From NCBI GenBank assembly GCA_965649765.1, contig OZ287749.1, positions 64,294,001-64,358,000 on the forward strand: DNA of 64,000 nucleotides. The letters run 5' to 3'. This document shows, in pieces, positions 1,499 through 34,782 of the stretch (positions are counted from its first letter, which is position 1; each line of letters opens with the position of its first letter). A program made the position numbers and the translations under genes. Below the pieces are notes generated by a model that saw nothing but the letters and a program-made list of their open reading frames with translations, was not told where the DNA came from and did no database searches. This DNA comes from Bispira polyomma (taxonomy: Eukaryota).

Positions 1499-4400
1499 CT
1501 GGAGAGAGAAGAGAAGAGACATGTAAGTTAACAAACCTTTATACCTTTGTAATTGGGTGGTACACACATGGTAATGGGTTTCTGGAAAGCAATTTAAAAA
1601 AAAATGCAATTTCAATTATTTAAACTAAATTTTAATAATTAATCATTTATGTAAATAAATTAGTTAGAGAGACAGCAAAAAAAAAAAAACAACCAGAAAA
1701 CTTTGATATTGGTGATAGGTTCTTGTACACAGAGTAATCAGTTCTGGTCTGCAACAAAGACAAAAATCAGCCATCATGATGTTGGATTTTTGCAATTATT
1801 GGGTTATTATTAAAAGTTTATTTTAGTTATATGAATTCCAATAGATTTGTCTATAACTGACTTTAGTATAGTTTTGGTTCCAACCAACATTTCAGTTTTA
1901 TAAGATAAACAATTTAAGATAGATTGTCATATTATATTTAAATAAATTATGTTTGTACAAAAACCTTTTTACACGCATAAATTATTATTTAGATTGACAT
2001 TTTCACATAATATATTATCAAGACACTAAGACAATAAGATAATAATATATAAAAATATATGTAACATTCTAAACACGCACTAAAAATTAACACAACATTC
2101 AAATAGCTTACAATAACATATGCACCTACCTCTGCTTTAAGAGTACATTAGTAAATGGAGAGATGGAACAAGTCTTGCAAATGTTCATCTTATATATTGT
2201 CGTTAGAGGTCGCCTAGTGGTTCCAAGCATCTGCTTTAATACCACTAGCTTTTTACCCCTGAGGACAGAGAAACCAACTGTCACTGTTTGCTTCATGTGA
2301 GAATGTTTGCGATATTTACCGCAGGTCATGTGGTTTACAGTAAAAATAGTGTTCCATTCCCATTTGTATATCTTAGCGTTATAGGATTCGCCTTTGTGGT
2401 ACTATACCTTGAACCACAGTATTGAATTCTGTGTATACCATAGTTTGGGAGTGTGTTATTCCAATTCTAACATTGACAAAATAATTTTTAAAAATGAAAC
2501 TTACCTTAAATTTAAAAGACCCATTTTTTCACTTGGCATAAATGCAGGATGTTCCATCTTACTTATGCAATGGAAACTGATAGAACGGCCAATGAGTCTA
2601 TTCTGAATTTTACCAAGGTTTTCGGACAATCAAAATTGCAGACGCATCAGTGTCATGCAAATATGTAAAAAGTAATGTAAATCCAAATCAGTTTAAATTC
2701 AAGCCAAGAAGGTAGTCTCTTACCAGTAACATATCTACATTTAATCATTAATGTGGCTTAATCAATAACGCACTTGCACATCAATGCATACTGCTGTATT
2801 ATTACTGATTACTTATAGATATTATCGGTACAATGTTACTGCACCAAAATATGGCTGTAAATTATGGTTTGGCTCTTCGGCAACAATTACCAGTCGGCAC
2901 AACATAGCATAAAAAAATAGCTCAAAACTAGACATCGGCACTTTTTACAATGATTTCTAGTTGAAAATTTAAACGATATGTAATCTTAATATCATTGGCA
3001 ATAGCATAAGGTATTGGGTACATAATTTTCACAGTGTTTAGGCGATTAGATGATCCCTGGTTTGACTCCCGGTAACATCGGAATAAGTATCAGGAGATAA
3101 TATCCTTATGTAATATGGGAAAACGCGATTATCTACTGATGATAATCCAATTGTCTTCATATTAGGATCATCAGTAATGGTTTATCGATTCTTACGTTTT
3201 ACTTTTATAAAAAGCTTGGCATCAACAATAAGTTAGAAATCCACAATGCAATCAAACAATAATACAAGTTTACAAAAAAAAAATACAGCCCATCCTATTA
3301 GGGAAAGGAATAATCCCCGGTATTGGTTTCTCATATATTTAGAAAAAGCAATCAAAAAAAATAGAAAAAAAACAAAACACTAACAAATCATGGTAATATT
3401 TGGAATATTTGTAGTAACAAAAATTACCCATCCCTGAGATAACAAAAATCAGAGTGTATCAGAGGAAGCAAGATGCTACATTTAACCAAGTTACAGCTGA
3501 GAAATCCGGCAATACAGGAAATCAGAAGAAATCAGTGAATTAGATGTCAACAGTGTCACAGTGGGACTCAGTCTAAACCCTGCAGCTAAAACATAGGGCA
3601 CCAGCCCAGGGTTTAAGGTCAACGCCAACTTAACTTCTAAAGGCTAATATTTATCCTGGGGTGTTTTTAGACTAAATAGCATGCCCTTTCATGAAGTAAA
3701 AGCAAAATTTAATGACTAATGTTAATTTTTTAGAAAGGATGTATTTTTTTTGTTAAATGTTTTTTATGGGTATTAAATGTTTTGGCATCTTGAGGTCACC
3801 CTGCTTCCAGTAATTAATGTTACTTTTATATCTCTCTAATATATATATACTTAAAAGTTAACTACAAAAAATATCTAGCTAACTGTATAATTTGACATTT
3901 AAATAATATGTTACAGTGTCTTTACTTATAAGCTCAGATTCTGTTTCATATTTGAGTTATACTTCTTCAACTCAAACTTAGTTTCCACATATATTACATC
4001 CAACAAACCAACAAACTCAATATCTTTTCTACACAGAGATACTACCCCATGGTGTATTTATTATGCATTCTAATGTGTGTGTGTATTTAAACTTCTGAGG
4101 AACATAATTTGAGATGATCGAGATCCTTGCTACAGACATTGCCTATACTATTTTTCTATAACAACCCCCCCCCCTCCCCCCGCCTCCTCTTCCCCATCCC
4201 TCTAAGTGAGTCATTCAAGATTCTGCTTGCAGTCAGTCCGCATTTTCTCCTGTTTTAATCGACCTGACTTCCCATATGCTCCACACTCCAAACTTCGAGC
4301 TCAAAAGCTTAGACTTAACACACATGAAGGCCATGTGTAGAAGTGTCATTGTATATACTAAGATAACCTATACGTGGTGTAACCATTTATTTTAGAAGAG

Positions 4401-7400
4401 CTTTCAATGCTGAATTCAAATATGCAGTCAAATTGTACTTAACGTCACTCTAACCAAATATACACAGACCATAGATTTGAGTTTGAGGTTTAGAGATTTT
4501 TAAAGGAAGGATACGACCACTGGGACTTCCTCATTGGGATGATCTGTACAGCGTCAGAAAAAAGGGCTCCAACTTGGGTCAGGAGGGGGGGGGGGGTCAC
4601 TTTTAGGAACGCGTGGGGGTGCAGCTCAAAATATTCTAAATATGTTGCCAAAAGTCTTGTATATTCAAAATATAATGGCCAGGTCGCACTTTTGCGATCC
4701 GTGAAAGAGCTCAATGAGAACTAAGCGATATACAAACTGCACTCGTCACCACTGAATAGGCATGTTTTTTAGTCTTCGCCAAGCTTTCTTAACAAGACCC
4801 TAACACAATGACAACTCGTTCTTTGTGCGTTTAATGTGGTGACGGAGCGTTCGTGTTTTGATTTCACCGAACTAGCTCAATTTTAAATTATCTCATTTTA
4901 TATGACTTTCAAATTAATTATAATGATAAAACATGAAGTTTATAACGTATTTTTAGGTAATTTTTTATGGTTGGGGAAAGCAGTTTCCCAAAGCTGCACC
5001 ATTGAGCATTGAGGAAGGTAAGTTAACATGGGTAAGTATAAAAACACTGTATGTAAGAGTGTTTTTGCTTTTGTCTACGTGCATGGGGCATACTTTGTAC
5101 AAGCTCCACTCGAATTTGACAATAGTTCTTGTGATGCATTGTCAACACAACCCTTGCGTTTCTCGAAAGTCCACCCCTGCTGCTTGTCAAAATTTAAAGT
5201 TGAAAACTAAATTTTCACAATGACTTGAATGATGCGTGACATACACATAAACATAATTACCTCAAATAATGATTCTGCCCATTGCGATCTTGCCTGCTTT
5301 CTATGTGATTTTAACACATTCAAAACTTGATCCTTCTCGGCTTTACATAGCATTCTTACAGTGTTTGCACAGGCATCTCATTCGCAGATCGCAAAAGTTG
5401 AATGCTCACACAGACAAACTAGTTTAAACTAGCTTGAAGCGTGTTACTTGGTGAACTGGGGTTTGAGTATGTAATAAGTACACTGTATTATATTTTTGAC
5501 ATATGGCTTAAGTTCCCAGCTGTCATGTATCGGGACTATTATAAGACAAACTGCAATTTAAGTGAACTAAAATGTGACTAGTTTTCAAAAAAAAAATAGT
5601 CTACATATTTTCTACATTGCTGTTAGCCTTGAATAAGAACTTAATAATGCACAAATTGCAATTGAAAGTAAAAAGACCTGTCCCTAGTTTAGATTTTTTT
5701 CTTAAAAGGCACTTTAGTGATAAACATTATACTGGTAAATTGATAAACCTTTATCTGATATCTAAGCTCATTAGTGATCAGCTCAGATAGCTCAGATACA
5801 CGTTCGTATTTCCACTTTTAATCATAGGAGATTTTTTCTAGAATAAAATGGTCTTAAATTCGAGGATACAAGATTTTTTGTCTAAATGCTATAAATGTTT
5901 ACTGGTTGTGGACTTTTATTCTATTATGACCATAACCTTACGTTATTGTGTGTCTGCGTATGTGTGTTGGTGCGTGTATTTGTCTTTCTTTGTCAGATAC
6001 AAACATTTTCAATTTTTAAAACAATATTTTACCACAATGTCACAACTCTGAAAAATTGTTTATTTGACCTGTTCCAGACAATATTGTTTGAGATTTTTTT
6101 TTTTTAATCACATGACACATTGTTGCATTATTTCCACTGTTTATATTTCTATTGCAGAAGCTTATCTGAACCCTACATCATTTGAAACTAGGGAGGCCAT
6201 TTAGTCAGGCACACAGCAGTGCCAAAAAATGCACAAACCAAACTCCTGGACCCAACCCCCATTCATCCACTAAATTTTATGTATATCAGTTCAGTAATTT
6301 TTTTCTAATCAAGGTGACAAACAAACACACGAACGGACACTGGCAAAAAACAAAACCCTTCTTGTTGAAGGAAGATATAAATAGCTTTTCATGAAAAAAA
6401 CGAACCCAAAAAGTACTCTTTCATTATTCAAGTGAATAATTAAAAGCATGTTTGGGTAGGGAGGAAGTTATCCATTAAAATGTTTCAAAAATTTCCTACT
6501 TGGATCAATTAAATATTTCTCTAGTGAGTGACAGCTTTTTGTATACACATTAAAAAAATCTCCAATTATTCACACAATATGACAAAGGATCACCAAGGCA
6601 CTGCTCTTGTCACTTTCAGTGTATGAAGGGTTTTTTCAGTATTTCAATTTGTAAAAAAAATATCACCAGCTTTTGATTAGCTAATATAAAACACTTGCCA
6701 AACCCAGAGATGGCTCTTTGCTGTCTTTTGTTAAAGACTTAATAAAAGCAGATTAAACTTTTCTCCCTGCCATGAAAAGGAGGTTGCCTTTTAAAAAAAT
6801 TCAATGGTTAGCAGGCACACAAAAACACACACACAGAGATAGCCTTGTCCACAGTCTCTTTATGTTAAAAATATTAAAATTTTTATTTCAATTATATTCC
6901 ATCCTAGATCAATAAATATTAGATAAAAGCCATTCAGTCTAGGAATATTTACAGTGCTCATAGATTTAAGAAGAGTTTTCAGTGTATTGTTTTCTATATA
7001 TGCACAAGTGAAAGTTTACAAAAAGAGTGCAACAAAAAAAATCAACTTGAGGGGGGTTCTAAGGGGTTCTACTCATGAATAGGGGTCCTTATTTATGGTT
7101 TGGCAAATGTGGCCCTAATCAAGCCTAAATTGTAGCCCTGGCTCAGAAACACCACCTATTCACAATGGCATCACCGCTCATGAATCAAGTGAAATGGGAG
7201 AGTTTTAAGCGATTGATCTCTTTGTACCTTTTACTTAAAGCCCATTCACTACCACCGCCCCATGCCCCCCCCCTCTCTCTCTTCATTTCTTAGCTAATTC
7301 TGGGTCATGATTTTATCCCATATTTCTTATGTCGCCAGCTTCTCACTAAGGCTATAAATCCTCTACTAGAACGACCCCTTAGAATGATATCACTCGTAGT

Positions 7401-27945: not shown

Positions 27946-28150
27946 GTGTATAGCACGAACACATAAGGGTTCTGATAATTCAGTTCAATAGTTAGCTTAT
28001 ACCTTAACCCCTAGGGAATGAACCTGACACTAAAACTTCAGGAGCATTTACAAATCAATAACCAATCACATTTATTCCACCAATTGCTAGAGCACAATTC
28101 CCAATTGGGGGGTCATTCATATTGAGACCACATCACATGAAGGAGCACAA
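27946..28150 (+). repeat. Split direct repeat A1
   Basis: Matches 33734-33939 with ~8 substitutions and one homopolymer indel by my manual count. Confidence 0.95.
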
Positions 28151-28259: not shown

Positions 28260-29513
28260 ATGGGACGTTCAAGAAAAACACCATCTGCAGGATCAAAGCC
28301 AGCTAAAGTCAAGAAAACCACAGCGAAGGAAAAAAAGACTACAATTCAGGATCAGGTAAATGGGAGTTTTATATCCGATTTACCCTTCCCCTTGGGTCAA
28401 ACAACACCCCAGAATAGATCAAGTTCAGCCGGATCTGAGTTTAACCAGTATGCAGGCTCCAATCCCATTCACACGGATGTCGGGCAGATCCACACTAATC
28501 AACCACTCGGGTCACTTGCTACTACTACAAACGTGCCGGCAGGTGATACAGCACAAATGATGGAAATCTTGAGGAGATTGGAGCAGTCCAACGCGGACTT
28601 AGCCCGGCGCCTCCACAGGGTGGAATCTCGAGAGTCTCAGAATACTATTCCACGCTCTTACTTCCAGCAGTACCTAACACCGGGGCCACGGGGGGTCACA
28701 TCCCACGTACTCAGCCATTACATACAGTACAGGACTCGCTAGTTCTCCCAAGGGCCACCAACGTTCATGACTATGCCAGAGACGGAATCGTCCCAGGGGT
28801 GGATGCGCTTAAGGCACTACCATATGTACAAGCCATTGTAAATCAACGGATCTCGGAGTATGAAGCTCATGCTCACAGCATCTTCCACCAAGGTAAGCTC
28901 CCCCCCCCCCCCCACTACTCGTCCAAAGTCGGGCCGTTTTAACTATACAGATATTGCATCATCAGACCCTAAGCTTCGTTGGCCTAATGAGGGTTTCGCA
29001 GGGGGAGCTTCTAGAAAGAGACCAGGTTTTGACGACCTAATTTTACCACAGTGGGCGGCAGAGCATCTTTCCAACGCTATGCAGGTTTCGGATCCACTAA
29101 TATTCAGAGAAATGGTACACCAGCTAGTGCTTTCACTTTGCAACGCTTCATCATTACCATGGGAAGTGGTAAGGTCGGCATGGGGCCAGAACATGCATGA
29201 AGTAGAAGAGGGTCGTCTCAGGTGGGACAACACCATGCAATGGTCGCTGAATTGGCTTAGTTTGTCCCAGATGGCCATGGCGACTTCTAACACATCAGGC
29301 AAGCATAACTCAACGGACGGTAAATCCTCAAAAATGATTTGTAAACTCTTCAACAGCGGCAAGTGCTCGCATAATTCTGACCACGGCACATACCGGCATG
29401 TGTGTTGGCATTGTGCCACAGTACTACATAAAGACAGCCAACATCCAGAATTTAAGTGCTATCGTTCCAATTCGTCCAAACAAACCGATAGTAGGACTCC
29501 ACATAACAGCTAG
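28260..29513 (+). pseudogene. gag: Ngaro ORF1, Gag-like protein with C-terminal Cys/His zinc finger; two compensating frameshifts
   Basis: ATG 28260 MGRSRKTP...; coiled-coil-like MMEILRRLEQSNADLARRL; the plausible frame shifts to DGIVPGVDALKALPYVQAIVNQRISEYE..QGK and returns at the C14 run 28900-28913 into KSGRFN..WP..; ends with CKLFNSGKC..HVCWHC..H...C finger, TAG 29511-29513. Confidence 0.85.
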
Positions 29514-30289: not shown

Positions 30290-32545
30290 ATGGGCAAATA
30301 TTTTCCAATAATACATGTGGGAACAGATAATGCTGAAATTTCGGTGTTTTATTGGCAACAACCAAGTGAAGATCAGGTGCATTATAATTACATAAAATGC
30401 CAGGATTTGGCAGATATTCCACTTCACATTTCTTACACCACGGAACAAGACTTGGCAGTGTACAACCAAATTCAGCATCATGATCAGGAGGCCATGACCT
30501 TGGCTAAGCAAACTTTCTTACTTCATGAAAAAGACAGACAATGCATGTCCCAATTTGGCTATGATTATGCTGATCATATCACTGCTATTATTGACAAGTT
30601 GATAAGTGATGATGCTGATACTTTGGCACACGATGACAGTAATACTGTGGTAAATGGTCATAATACTAACACTATTAACACCAATGTTCATTGTAATGTA
30701 GCACAGAATGCTAGAATCATGTCGTCCGTTTTCTCTGAACATATTTCCGAAATTTCTCCAGTCAGCAAAAATTGTAAGGACAGTAAGGCTAAGGATTTCA
30801 ATCTCCCTGATAAGGATAGGGGATTTATTGCTCTTTCGGCTACAGATTTCACTTTTTATGGCCCAGATAGGGATTTTAAAAAATTTGACAATATTGATGC
30901 GTTTATTGAAGTAGCAAACATTATTAAGGACACAGTCTGTTTCAATTACAAAGGGGCTCGGATTCCTTTGCTCTCTGACTTAAATATCGAGGCTTGGGAA
31001 AAATTGCTCAGCGACTATCCTGATAAGTTACTTTTTCAGTATCTCAAATTTGGATTCCCACTTTCCCTTACTGATTCTGATCAACCTAAAATTACTGAAG
31101 TTGCTAACCACCATTCGGCTCTTCAGCATATAGATGCAGTTGGCCAATACCTGGAAAAAGAATATTCACACGGTGCCATGTTAGGTCCAGTTAATCACGT
31201 TGACAGTGATTTATATCACTGTTCTCCCCTTCTCACACGTCCTAAAGATAACAATAAGCATAGGGTGATTCTGAACTTGTCACACCCTCAGGGTAACTTG
31301 GTCAATGACAAGGTAGACAGGGACTGTTTTGACAGGGTCAGATTTGCTCTTAAGTTCCCATCTATCGACGATATTACAGCCAAAATCAGAGACGCCCCTG
31401 ACGCTAGGATATATAAACTGGACATCGCCAGGGCCTTTCGTAACTTAAGGGTAGACCCAGTCGACGCCATGAAACTAGGCATAAAAGTTAAGGGTAACAG
31501 CTACATTGATCCTGCGGTTGCTTTTGGCTGGGTCCACGGCTCGGCGGCGTTCCAGCGTCTCTCTGACGTCATAGCACATGAAATGGGTAGGTGTGGTCAC
31601 CAGGTGTTCTGTTACATCGATGACTACATTGGTATATCCCCCAGGAACGATGCAGATAGGGCTTTTCGTGATATAACTGATCTGGTGACCTCATTAGGTC
31701 TTCCTAGCGATCAGGACAAGTTATCTCCCCCTAGTACTAAAGTAACGTGTTTAGGCATTGATATTGACTTGAATGAGGGCGTTATCAGCATAACTAAAGA
31801 AAAAATAAAGGAAACCTATGATGCTTGTTTAGAAATAAGTAACAAAACCTGGATCTCGCAAAAAAAATTTCAATCTATTCTAGGTAAGCTTCTCTACATA
31901 CATAAGTGCATGAAACCTGCACGCATTTTTGTCAATAGACTTCTTGCAGCTTTTAGGAATAATCCACTGGTCAAAAGATTTAAGGTTACTGAAGAGATTA
32001 AGGCAGATTTGCAATGGTTTGTCATTTTCTTACCAACTTTTAACGGGGTTACTTACATAGAACCACTAGAACAAACCCAAGGAAATGAAGTGTTCATAGA
32101 TGCTTGCTTTACTGGTTTAGGCGGCATTTATGGCAAACAAGTATATACTGTCCCCTTTCATAATATATATAACCTTAATCTCACAATAGTTCACTTAGAG
32201 ATGTTGAACATCCTGATTGCTCTCAGATTATGGGCAGTCGAATGGGCACACTCTAGAATAAAAATGAACTGTGACAATATGGCAGTAGTGCTGGTTGTCG
32301 GTTTTAGTAAGACTAAGGAAAAATTTCTCGCTCTATGCCTCAGGAGCGAGCCAAATATGCCAGCCAAATATGATATCACACTGGAGGTCCAACACATTAG
32401 GGGCAAAAAGAACGTCATGGCAGACTACCTTTCTAGAATATATTCAGAAAATCCAATAACTGTGGACATTAACAATGATGACTATAAACACCTCATCTGG
32501 AATCATATTCCAGTAGCTTATTTTATTATAAATTTTACATTATAA
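30290..32545 (+). CDS. pol: Ngaro Pol: reverse transcriptase + RNase H (751-aa open frame)
   Basis: RT motifs SPLLTRPK..RVILNLS, YKLDIARAFRNL, FGWVHGSAAFQRLS, YIDD, KLSPPS..CLGI; DIRS-type RNaseH FIDAC..GLGG, IVHLEMLNI, CDNMAVV, HIRGKKNVMADYLSR with all acidic catalytic residues present. Confidence 0.95.
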   Translation: MGKYFPIIHVGTDNAEISVFYWQQPSEDQVHYNYIKCQDLADIPLHISYTTEQDLAVYNQIQHHDQEAMTLAKQTFLLHEKDRQCMSQFGYDYADHITAIIDKLISDDADTLAHDDSNTVVNGHNTNTINTNVHCNVAQNARIMSSVFSEHISEISPVSKNCKDSKAKDFNLPDKDRGFIALSATDFTFYGPDRDFKKFDNIDAFIEVANIIKDTVCFNYKGARIPLLSDLNIEAWEKLLSDYPDKLLFQYLKFGFPLSLTDSDQPKITEVANHHSALQHIDAVGQYLEKEYSHGAMLGPVNHVDSDLYHCSPLLTRPKDNNKHRVILNLSHPQGNLVNDKVDRDCFDRVRFALKFPSIDDITAKIRDAPDARIYKLDIARAFRNLRVDPVDAMKLGIKVKGNSYIDPAVAFGWVHGSAAFQRLSDVIAHEMGRCGHQVFCYIDDYIGISPRNDADRAFRDITDLVTSLGLPSDQDKLSPPSTKVTCLGIDIDLNEGVISITKEKIKETYDACLEISNKTWISQKKFQSILGKLLYIHKCMKPARIFVNRLLAAFRNNPLVKRFKVTEEIKADLQWFVIFLPTFNGVTYIEPLEQTQGNEVFIDACFTGLGGIYGKQVYTVPFHNIYNLNLTIVHLEMLNILIALRLWAVEWAHSRIKMNCDNMAVVLVVGFSKTKEKFLALCLRSEPNMPAKYDITLEVQHIRGKKNVMADYLSRIYSENPITVDINNDDYKHLIWNHIPVAYFIINFTL

Positions 32546-32551
32546 TTTCAG

Positions 32552-33527
32552 ATGTTTTCACTGTTACACAGCCACTTATGACTTCAGCATGGGACAGACT
32601 TAACACTGCTCTTCGCCCAAATACTGCATCAGCATAAAGTAATCAGTTTAAGACATTTTTGGCTTTCAATTGCTTTGTTAGGATTCAGGCAGTTGACACA
32701 CAGTCATTCCTTGCTTTCCTAGAATATTTGGTACAAAATTCTCTTTCTCCTAAGGCTATTGCAAACTATCTTTCTGCTATTAAATTTATGGCTAGGAAAT
32801 TTCATTGGGATTTGGCTATATTTAAAAACAACACGGTTGCTTTATTTATGAGAAGTTTGTCCCATAATTCGCATTTCAGACCTCAGCCTAAAGGTATATT
32901 TAACATTAAACATATGGCTCTTATCTCGCAGGGTTGCGACATACTTTCTGTTCCTGTGCTATATAGGGCCATCTTTCTCCTTGCTTTTTACGGGTTTCTT
33001 CGCATATCCAACATTGCTCCACACTCTAGGGCTACCTTTGACCCCTCCAGACATTTCGTAAGAAAGGATGTCATATTTGGCCATCCAGGGGCCCACATTA
33101 TTCTCAAGTGGGCCAAAAACTTACAGGATAGGTCCCAGTCACATGTAATTCAAATCCCCACGGTTAAGAACACCATTCTTTGCCTTGTGAGGGCCCTACA
33201 GAGATTACTCTCATCTAGACACCTTCCTGACTCTGCACTTTTGTTTGCAGAATCTCACCATCCAAACTTCTCAGTGATAGACACTCATGTGCGTTCTGCA
33301 CTCACTTCTGTGTTGACACATATAGGCATTCCACACAAATCACACACATTCCACACATTCAGAAGGTCAGGTGCCACATATGCCTTTAACAATAACGTTT
33401 TTTGCAAAATATCATGTCTCATGGGCTGTGGAGGTCATCAGCAGTTTGGACCTATCTTCAGAAAACACCACAAGCAGCCTCCACAGTCCCCCTTACCTTT
33501 GCCTCCTCTATTCCCCTAAATTTTTGA
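32552..33527 (+). pseudogene. Tyrosine recombinase (YR) of the retrotransposon; one nonsense codon and one frameshift
   Basis: AFYGFLRISN (catalytic R) and HTFRR (HxxR). After a 1-nt loss in the T-run 33398-33403 the frame reads LQNIMSHGLWRSSAVWTYL (H and catalytic Y) to TGA 33525-33527. In-frame TAA 32635-32637 sits at the expected Tyr of the RPNTASAY motif. Confidence 0.92.
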
Positions 33528-33537
33528 CTTTGGGTTT

Positions 33538-33733
33538 GGGTGTTTTTAAAATCTGGATATTTTAAAATCCTATTATACTATATTTATTGATAACATTATA
33601 TATTTTATTAATATGTACAGTAATAAAACCTCAAACCTAGTTTTATTCCCTTGTTCACATTTGCAAACTTCATTCAACTATGTAGCTCTAGAACTTAACT
33701 TTGGCCTTGACCTTAATACTTCACTAGTAAACT
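33538..33733 (+). repeat. Split direct repeat B1 (contains AATAAA 33622-33627)
   Basis: Matches 34592-34782; abuts A2 to form the circle-junction copy ...AAACTGTGTATAGC. Confidence 0.95.
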
Positions 33734-33939
33734 GTGTATAGCACGACCACATAAGGGTTCTGATAATTCAGTTCAATAGTTAGCTTATACCTTAACCCCT
33801 AGGGAATGAACCTGACACTAAAACTTCAGGAGCATTTACTAATCAATAACCAATCACATTCATTCCACCAATTGCTAGAGCACAATTCCCAATTGGGGGG
33901 GTCATTCATATTGAGACCACATCATGTAGAGGAACACAA
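33734..33939 (+). repeat. Split direct repeat A2
   Basis: Matches 27946-28150. Confidence 0.95.
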
Positions 33940-34591
33940 TAGAAAAGTGCCCACCGCCACCTCGTCTTCCACCAAAATATCCCTTATTAACAATAAGGTT
34001 TTCTCAAGGCACTTGATTAGAAACAACTCTGTTGTTTTGTTAGCAGCAATATGGACTCGTGACCATGTGGAGGTATGGTTCCCCCTTGGTAACTACCCCT
34101 TGGGTGGGATCCAGGGAGGATTATTAGCTCTGCAGGGGGGAACCTTCCTCTGCTAGGCGACTAGGTGCCACAGGTCACGAACCCCCTACATTGCTGCTTA
34201 GGCATTGAAACATAGCACACATTTTCAAGTATATTTATTTTATCATACTTTAGTCTAGCATAAAGGCTTAGGATGAGTTGACAGAGTACTTGCTGACAGG
34301 TACCCATCTAGGGCAATGGCTTGCTGCTAGTTGTATTTGCACATTATATATCTAGGGCAGACTTAAAAGGATTACTGCAGTATGTCCGTTAGATAGTCTC
34401 ATTTTCATATGTAAGAATTATATGTTTTACATTGTTGCCTCCTGCGTGGGGTTTCTCTATATTTATTAATGATATGGTAATAACCAGTAACGTATGGTCA
34501 ATGATGAATTATTGGTTTATACACTGTGGAAGGAACTAGACTTGTTTAATTACGTCTTGTGATATTTCCTTTTATTTTCTGTACTTTGTAC
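33940..34591 (+). ncRNA. Candidate structured non-coding RNA/ssDNA element in the A2-B2 spacer
   Basis: Three nested long stems (34042-34198), three consecutive triloop hairpins (33982-34037) and a CTAG-GCGA-CTAG GNRA hairpin; no credible ORF. Expression is not shown. Confidence 0.45.
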
Positions 34592-34782
34592 GGGTGTTTT
34601 TAAAATATTTTAAAATCCTATTATACTACATGTATTGATAACATTACATATTTTACTAATATGTACAGTAATAAAACCTCAAACCTAGTTTTATTCCCTT
34701 GTTCACACTTGCAAACTTCATTCAACTATGTAGCTCTAGAGCTTAACTTTGGCCTTGACCTTAATACTTCACCAGTGAACTG
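34592..34782 (+). repeat. Split direct repeat B2 (3' terminus; AATAAA 34670-34675)
   Basis: Matches 33538-33733. Confidence 0.95.

Follow-up and report, generated by a model that had tools for sequence, protein, structure and literature searches.

A conserved 160-nucleotide RNA rod in the 3′ untranslated part of the Ngaro retrotransposons of Bispira polyomma

To our knowledge, the tyrosine-recombinase retrotransposons (DIRS, Ngaro and PAT) are the least understood order of retroelements, and we know of no account of how their RNA is chosen, exported, packaged and primed. Such gaps are stated for DIRS-1 (PMC7192593), whose primer is given as unknown; the sole proposal is a short hairpin of about 14 nt at the 3′ end of the RNA, at positions 4792–4805 (Poulter and Goodwin, via PMC7192593). 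Structured RNA is also carried by other retroelements. The tails of R2 and stringent-type LINEs, which are located in the 3′ UTR and bound by the reverse transcriptase (RT), and the epsilon element of hepadnaviruses recruit the replication machinery; they are read by the elements' own polymerases, and their sequences differ between families. The constitutive transport element of the M-PMV type is a cis-acting extended stem of about 150–170 nt with conserved unpaired bases, located past the last gene but ahead of the 3′ terminal repeat of an LTR element, and drives the export of unspliced RNA by binding NXF1. Finally, the central domains of SINEs (CORE, V, Deu and others) represent blocks of about 100–170 nt which are shared by many repeat families of one genome.

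The RNA described here is encoded in a Ngaro retrotransposon of B. polyomma, which lies in the window, i.e., the whole stretch of 64,000 nucleotides that was analysed (contig OZ287749.1), and folds into a rod. The rod resembles the M-PMV-type element in being an extended stem of similar length with conserved unpaired bases and in lying downstream of the last gene and upstream of the 3′ terminal repeat in a retroelement, which would likewise have to export a candidate intron-containing RNA. It differs from that element in that its consensus contains a single internal loop, which is large and asymmetric, and a single three-way junction instead of two identical internal loops in two-fold symmetry, in showing no sequence similarity, and in belonging to a tyrosine-recombinase retrotransposon rather than an LTR element. 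Because the hallmark of two-fold symmetric loops is absent, the rod is not a member of the M-PMV element family, and the likeness concerns a possible mode of action. With the DIRS-1 hairpin, the rod shares its location in the non-coding 3′ part of a tyrosine-recombinase retrotransposon without a tRNA primer site, but it is 160 nt long, consists of multiple helices, is separated from the downstream poly(A) signal by about 470 nt and is supported by covariation. Unlike the R2 and LINE tails and epsilon, it has the same unpaired bases across very diverged families, and unlike the SINE central domains, it resides in autonomous elements at a fixed position and shows RNA covariation. Full-text literature searches yielded no publication on structured RNAs or ribozymes of Ngaro elements, nor one describing a conserved cis-acting RNA in tyrosine-recombinase retrotransposons in general. 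We regard the rod as a real RNA domain of Ngaro retrotransposons which is, as far as we found, undescribed.

The host element shows the split direct repeats A1 ... B1-A2 ... B2 and the Ngaro gene order of reverse transcriptase followed by tyrosine recombinase: an ORF between A1 and B1 (30290–32545) matches the reverse transcriptase family RVT_1, and homologues of the last ORF (32659–33519) carry the phage-integrase domain PF00589. The A1/A2 repeats (repeat families D2 and D4) are 84–98% identical, and the spacer of 665 bases between A2 and B2 holds the rod (Table 1). Within the 3′ region of the element, AATAAA occurs only in B1 and B2, at equal offset. Because a signal is already present in B1 (33622), full-length RNA must read past it, and because there are no others than those of B1 and B2, any full-length RNA extends about 470 nt beyond the rod, the signal at 34670 being the sole one downstream of it.

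Table 1. Positions of the repeats of the Ngaro element and of the parts of the rod (numbering of the window)
Feature	Position	Strand	Remarks
Repeat A1, left end of the element	27946–28150	+	direct repeat with 33734–33939
Repeat B1	33557–33734	+	96% direct repeat of 34605–34782; AATAAA at 33622
Repeat A2, directly abutting B1	33734–33939	+	direct repeat with A1
Conserved RNA rod, P1 to P1′	34042–34198	+	z −7.0; covariance-model match 34051–34186
P1, 5′ strand AGCAGCAAU	34042–34050	+	pairs with 34190–34198 AUUGCUGCU
P2, 5′ strand GGAC+UCGUGACC	34053–34064	+	pairs with 34173–34184
P2b, 5′ strand GUGGAGG	34067–34073	+	pairs with 34147–34153 CCUCUGC
P3, 5′ strand GGUUCCCCCUUG	34077–34088	+	pairs with 34133–34144 CAGGGGGGAACC
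P4 hairpin	34096–34119	+	CCCCUUGG (34096–34103) with CCAGGG(A)GG (34111–34119); in minimum-energy folds of several families
3′ side of the large P4-P3 internal loop	34120–34132	+	AGCUCUG (34126–34132) with 90% or higher conservation in 20 lineages
Near-invariant 18-mer GCUAGGCGACUAGGUGCC at the three-way junction	34152–34169	+	conserved across lineages
Repeat B2, right end of the element	34605–34782	+	direct repeat with B1; AATAAA at 34670

Units of about 1 kb that consist of A, spacer and B but have no ORF are common in the genome and correspond to solo LTRs (L005, L007, L010 and L012 in the family of the window, and L071, in which about 290 nt of the spacer are missing downstream of the rod). 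Head-to-tail arrangements were also observed, both of A-rod-B units (rods at C8:41324669 and 41325707, spaced by 1038 nt) and of whole elements (rods at C11:27735119 and 27740268, spaced by 5149 nt), as would be expected if circular or concatemeric intermediates integrated or recombined. The arrangement of the repeats bears on the question of which transcript contains the rod. With A1 placed before the genes and A2 before the rod, with an AATAAA in each of B1 and B2, and with tandem A-rod-B units about 1038 nt apart, the rod might be part of a separate short non-coding RNA that would start from a promoter in A2, end at the poly(A) signal of B2 and act in trans. The same features are compatible with a role in cis on read-through genomic RNA, and we consider a separate transcript improbable.

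The first-pass annotation of this DNA had described the spacer from 33940 to 34591 as a densely structured non-coding cassette. The minimum-energy fold of positions 33975–34205 (−89.7 kcal/mol, z-score of −4.3) was indeed better than shuffled controls, none of 200 shuffles being as good. Upon scanning the 3′ region in windows of 160 nt, however, only 34041–34200 stood out with a z-score of −7.0, whereas all other windows were at −2.3 or weaker. The three consecutive triloop hairpins reported upstream (33982–34037) do exist, but 11 of 200 shuffles folded equally well (z-score of −2.0), and two of the three were lost in copy L019, which is 80% identical. Further imperfect stems proposed at 34255–34395 did not exceed the shuffles (z-score of +0.6). 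The structured part is one rod of about 160 nt at 34042–34198 and not a cassette of 650 bases, which leaves the rod of the original proposal standing and removes the remainder. This rod forms an island of 57% G+C within surroundings of 21–42%.

The reported lack of a credible ORF in the spacer was borne out: its four ORFs of 34–116 amino acids gave no Pfam match at E ≤ 10, and a coding spacer was rejected. Indels of 1, 2 and 4 nt occur inside the rod among the copies, and a decayed gene, such as one for an SGNH hydrolase, was rejected as well. The rod had also not been recognised as a described RNA family, in agreement with our searches. Searches against Rfam 15, which includes the self-cleaving ribozymes, tRNA and snRNAs, gave no match in the rod at E ≤ 10, in seven other copies at E ≤ 1 or in the whole window at the gathering score, and ARAGORN detected no tRNA or tRNA-like gene. 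As to a tRNA primer-binding site, the near-invariant 18-mer does not start with TGG, and the TGG-initial stretches are not conserved between families. A search of the rest of the window for a long-range partner of the near-invariant block gave no result.

The conservation of the rod was assessed in the window's own genome (1.04 Gb in 13 chromosome-size pieces), the one genome from which the rod is known here. DNA searches retrieved about 20 near-identical copies of the entire spacer and many further places matching positions 34052–34180 only, at 77–82% identity, where the flanking coding DNA was about 66% identical to that of the window or could not be aligned. We set up a covariance model, R1, of the rod core with 136 positions and 43 pairs; P1, whose register differs between families, lies outside the model. 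R1 gave one match in the window, of 156.7 bits, and end-to-end matches in all 150 scored genome candidates (52–160 bits), amounting to at least 150 copies. The 45 sampled copies fall into at least 20 lineages at less than 90% identity, and the rod is the only sequence of the spacer which can be aligned between families. In every family with enough flank, it follows homologues of the recombinase (32–77% identical) and the RT (36–71% identical), at about 80–100 nt past A2 and 420–450 nt before B2, at 166–317 nt past the end of B1 and with B-to-B periods of 925–1048 nt. While the identity of the recombinase drops to 32%, that of the rod levels off near 70%, and of the 136 positions, 62, including 22 unpaired ones, reach 90% conservation or more across lineages. 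All diverged Ngaro families sampled in this genome have retained the rod in one and the same place under purifying selection.

A few short copies were inspected individually. L071, which first appeared to be free-standing, proved to be an A-rod-B unit from a Ngaro family of 6.5 kb, and L072 is an old rod fragment interrupted by a young repeat (L072:461–731, plus strand, more than 40 copies at 97–100% identity) that lies 14 nt upstream of the old rod. L061 and L063 contain no ORF within 3 kb. L063 additionally carries an array of a 21-bp tandem satellite (L063:1–1270) about 1.7 kb from its rod copy and, upstream of this good copy, a weak second match to R1 (L063:3647–3781, 30.7 bits), which overlaps a diverged repeat (3660–3773) recurring at 4157–4270 with 88% identity and a spacing of 497 nt.

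The genomic copies showed clear covariation. RNAalifold predicted 36 pairs on a plain MAFFT alignment of 34 copies, 11 of them with compensated double changes. In the model-based alignment of 45 distinct copies and 43 pairs, with controls in which the partners were slid by 1–3 columns, standard pairs occupied 89.7% of the cells compared to 43–52% after sliding, and two-sided changes were present in 18 of the 43 pairs compared to 5–10. The covariation score was 0.26 vs. 0.06–0.09 for the slid controls, and a value of 0.26 was reached by none of 500 shuffles.

Three of the nested helices of the first drawing, P1, P3 and an 8-bp P2 (34057–34064 with 34173–34180), are part of the minimum-energy fold, and each of them covaries across families. 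All three are present in the sequence as drawn. P1 is formed from unrelated sequences across most families, such as GCCACUGCU/GGCAGUGG, CCACCACU/AGUGGUGG or, with 14 bp, GCAUGGGCAUGGCAA/UUGCUGUGCUCAUGU, whereas 5 of the 19 lineages have a weak P1 or none. In most families, P2 extends without interruption over 12 bp (GAACCCGGGUCC/GGACCCGGGUUC), and four of the eight pairs of its core vary on both sides, with up to four pair types per position. The extension of P2 by TGTGG/CCACA, which had been drawn in addition, did not hold up: it shows A-C in 10 of 34 rows, belonging to one large family, and the competing helix P2b is compensated from G-C to A-U at the very column which breaks the extension. 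P2b is paired in 96% of the cells and includes three pairs with two-sided changes. In P3, CC/GG is replaced by GG/CC or AG/UU in other families, and as many as four or five kinds of pair (U-G, G-C, U-A, A-U) occur at single positions of P2 and P3. The two small hairpins once placed inside P3 are lost in other families, which keep the single hairpin P4 instead; in the alignment fitted to the model, P4 is paired in 79.6% of the cells, and three of its pairs vary on both sides. Its loop reads GUGGGAU in the window and GUGGGCU in sister copies. The rod of the window carries private substitutions at sites conserved among its sisters (A for G at 34065, A for C at 34109 and A for G at 34181), the second of which falls in the GGGCU loop, and, judging from its sequence, this copy is probably decaying.

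The paired columns contain 228 cells with G-U or U-G but only 67 with A-C or C-A, a 3.4-fold excess, and two G-U pairs are invariant across the alignment, confirming that the G-U pairs read correctly on the plus strand. Read on the minus strand, such pairs would turn into A-C mismatches, so that selection must act on the sense RNA. The same numbers bear on a role at the DNA level, in which a hairpin of the cDNA would serve second-strand priming or act as a recombinase substrate, and which we take to be highly improbable, as we do a functionless captured piece of a MITE or SINE. The antisense strand of the rod folds nearly as well (−84.9 kcal/mol, z-score of −4.6), and a linear single-stranded cDNA is made by DIRS-1 (PMC7192593). 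Both the surplus of G-U relative to A-C and the two invariant G-U pairs are nevertheless at odds with a selected DNA hairpin, and the rod is located internally, away from the B2-A1 junction that would be the expected recombinase site.

A captured insert would find a parallel in two low-GC metagenome contigs (L103:73–140 on the minus strand, and L108; JAAUYA01...), which share a match of 21 nt, ACTGCTAGGCGATTAGGTGCC, with the conserved block of the rod. The match lies inside a tRNA-derived SINE-like head with box A TGGCTCAGTGG and box B GGTTCAAATCC, in which neither ARAGORN nor Rfam called a tRNA, and the likeness to the rod stops after 21–25 nt. An exact scan of metagenome contigs for the 18-mer gave 18 matches, mostly in high-GC bacterial contigs, which is about the number expected by chance; a shared ancestry of the two blocks can be taken as a lead only. 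We rejected a MITE or SINE insert because none of the short copies examined is free-standing, all being A-rod-B units or old fragments, and because the rod follows the recombinase and RT homologues in every family with enough flank. A recent insertion is ruled out by the compensated changes and the fixed position down to 32% recombinase identity.

Besides the helices P1, P2, P2b, P3 and P4, the rod has a short side hairpin at the three-way junction, around which the bases do not vary. The near-invariant block can pair either as GGCG/UGCC or as CUAG-GCGA-CUAG, and because it is invariant, covariation does not separate the two. The CTAG-GCGA-CTAG side hairpin put forward in the first-pass annotation and the P2 extension display only one-sided, wobble-compatible changes, and together they may represent a second conformer of the rod. 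A candidate pseudoknot between GGGCU of the P4 loop and AGCUC gives no covariation signal since both sides are invariant. Covarying helices around invariant junction nucleotides form a ribozyme-like pattern, and other retroelements use HDV-like and hammerhead ribozymes, so that the rod might be modelled as a self-cleaving ribozyme or a processing signal that produces an internal RNA end and, for example, frees a 3′-OH for priming. We judge this very improbable in view of the blank Rfam searches for ribozymes (E ≤ 10 in the window, E ≤ 1 in seven other copies) and of the fold itself, which is a plain nested rod in which no supported pseudoknot was found. A bistable RNA serving as the missing origin of reverse transcription is likewise very unlikely in our view. 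In such a model, GUGUGG and GCUAGGCGACUAGGUGCC would engage in two competing pairings, the RNA would be cut at the conserved junction by itself or by RNase H, and one of the arms would offer the 3′-OH for priming; if true, this would represent a new class of ribozymes or self-primers specific to tyrosine-recombinase retrotransposons.

Covariation, the G-U bias and a conservation which outlasts that of the proteins all speak for the earlier proposal of a selected, element-encoded sense-strand RNA, and we are highly confident that 34042–34198 represents such an RNA acting in cis. Its role may be connected to splicing of the element. Two candidate splice sites were read directly from the sequence, a donor at 28893 (AAG/GUAAGC), with 14 consecutive C after it, and an acceptor at 32551 (UUUCAG/A), and together they bracket most of gag and all of pol. 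The donor is a strong candidate for the splice signal of a gag-pol intron, and donor and acceptor taken together are good candidates for its two ends. Matching the exon ends separately and comparing the coordinates revealed no intron-less copy of the window's Ngaro family. Because the rod lies 3′ of both candidate sites, it would be present in spliced and unspliced RNA alike, as is the M-PMV element. Even with splicing, an element needs its unspliced RNA to be exported, a task which simple retroviruses accomplish via a structured element at the equivalent 3′ position.

As the best explanation of the whole, we tentatively favour a selected cis RNA which docks a shared host factor and has a role in export. 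The rod would act in cis on the full-length RNA of the element, and its helices would fix the geometry of the invariant unpaired bases GUGUG, GGCU, AGCUCUG and GCUAGGCGACUAGGUGCC. A single trans-acting factor shared by all families would dock onto these bases, and a host protein is a more likely candidate for it than the elements' own Gag, RT or recombinase, which diverge quickly. The rod would thereby promote the export or expression of the intron-containing full-length RNA in the manner of a retroviral constitutive transport element, and it does lie within the 3′ untranslated part, where such elements are located. The specific assignment of a host factor and an export function is possible but doubtful. 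Signals read by an element's own proteins usually drift along with those proteins, and the invariance of the unpaired bases in spite of about 50% divergence of the proteins argues mildly against the latter and for a shared host factor, a reading absent from the roles listed in the first-pass annotation (packaging, priming, RT binding, ribozyme and poly(A) suppression). It is equally possible that the conserved unpaired bases form an RT-binding surface or a catalytic core.

Recognition by the element's own proteins, the main rival reading, was considered in two forms, as a packaging or dimerisation signal for Gag and as a start site of minus-strand synthesis or self-priming site for the RT, and appears rather unlikely to us. 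The conserved unpaired parts contain the palindromes CUAG, AGCU and CUGCAG, and palindromes are also carried by retroviral dimer-initiation loops; a priming role would furthermore make up for the missing tRNA primer-binding site. When a signal is recognised by proteins of the element that co-evolve with it, however, the motifs usually become family-specific, whereas the unpaired bases of the rod are invariant while Gag, RT and recombinase are 32–60% identical across families. A self-primer would have a precedent in the 3′ hairpin proposed for DIRS-1 (PMC7192593), but it must be at the 3′ terminus of the RNA, and the rod is located about 470 nt upstream of the poly(A) signal. The retention of the rod in ORF-less A-rod-B units would suit a signal of this kind, yet such units can arise by recombination between A1 and A2, and the presence of the rod there proves no requirement in cis. 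A signal contained in both spliced and unspliced RNA would also be a poor sole determinant of packaging.

To look beyond this genome, recombinase and RT sequences were used as queries and retrieved many Ngaro-like proteins with 40–57% identity, all from the ENA assemblies ERZ22147071 and ERZ25072384. R1, which was trained on one genome, was applied with filters off to six loci of these two assemblies and found nothing in five Ngaro-like loci of one assembly and in one truncated locus of the other; L110 is too short downstream to count in this test. In one of the foreign Ngaro-like elements, only about 87 nt separate A2 from B2. The rod may be specific to the lineage of this genome, and its absence from the six foreign loci weakly supports the preferred reading of a factor shared by the families of one host.

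For the genome studied here, R1 provides a sharp marker of the 3′ ends of Ngaro elements, which it detects with scores of 77–160 bits. For the tyrosine-recombinase retrotransposons as an order, the rod offers a concrete handle on their RNA biology, as it can be deleted, mutated with compensating changes, moved to reporters and used as bait for its partner.
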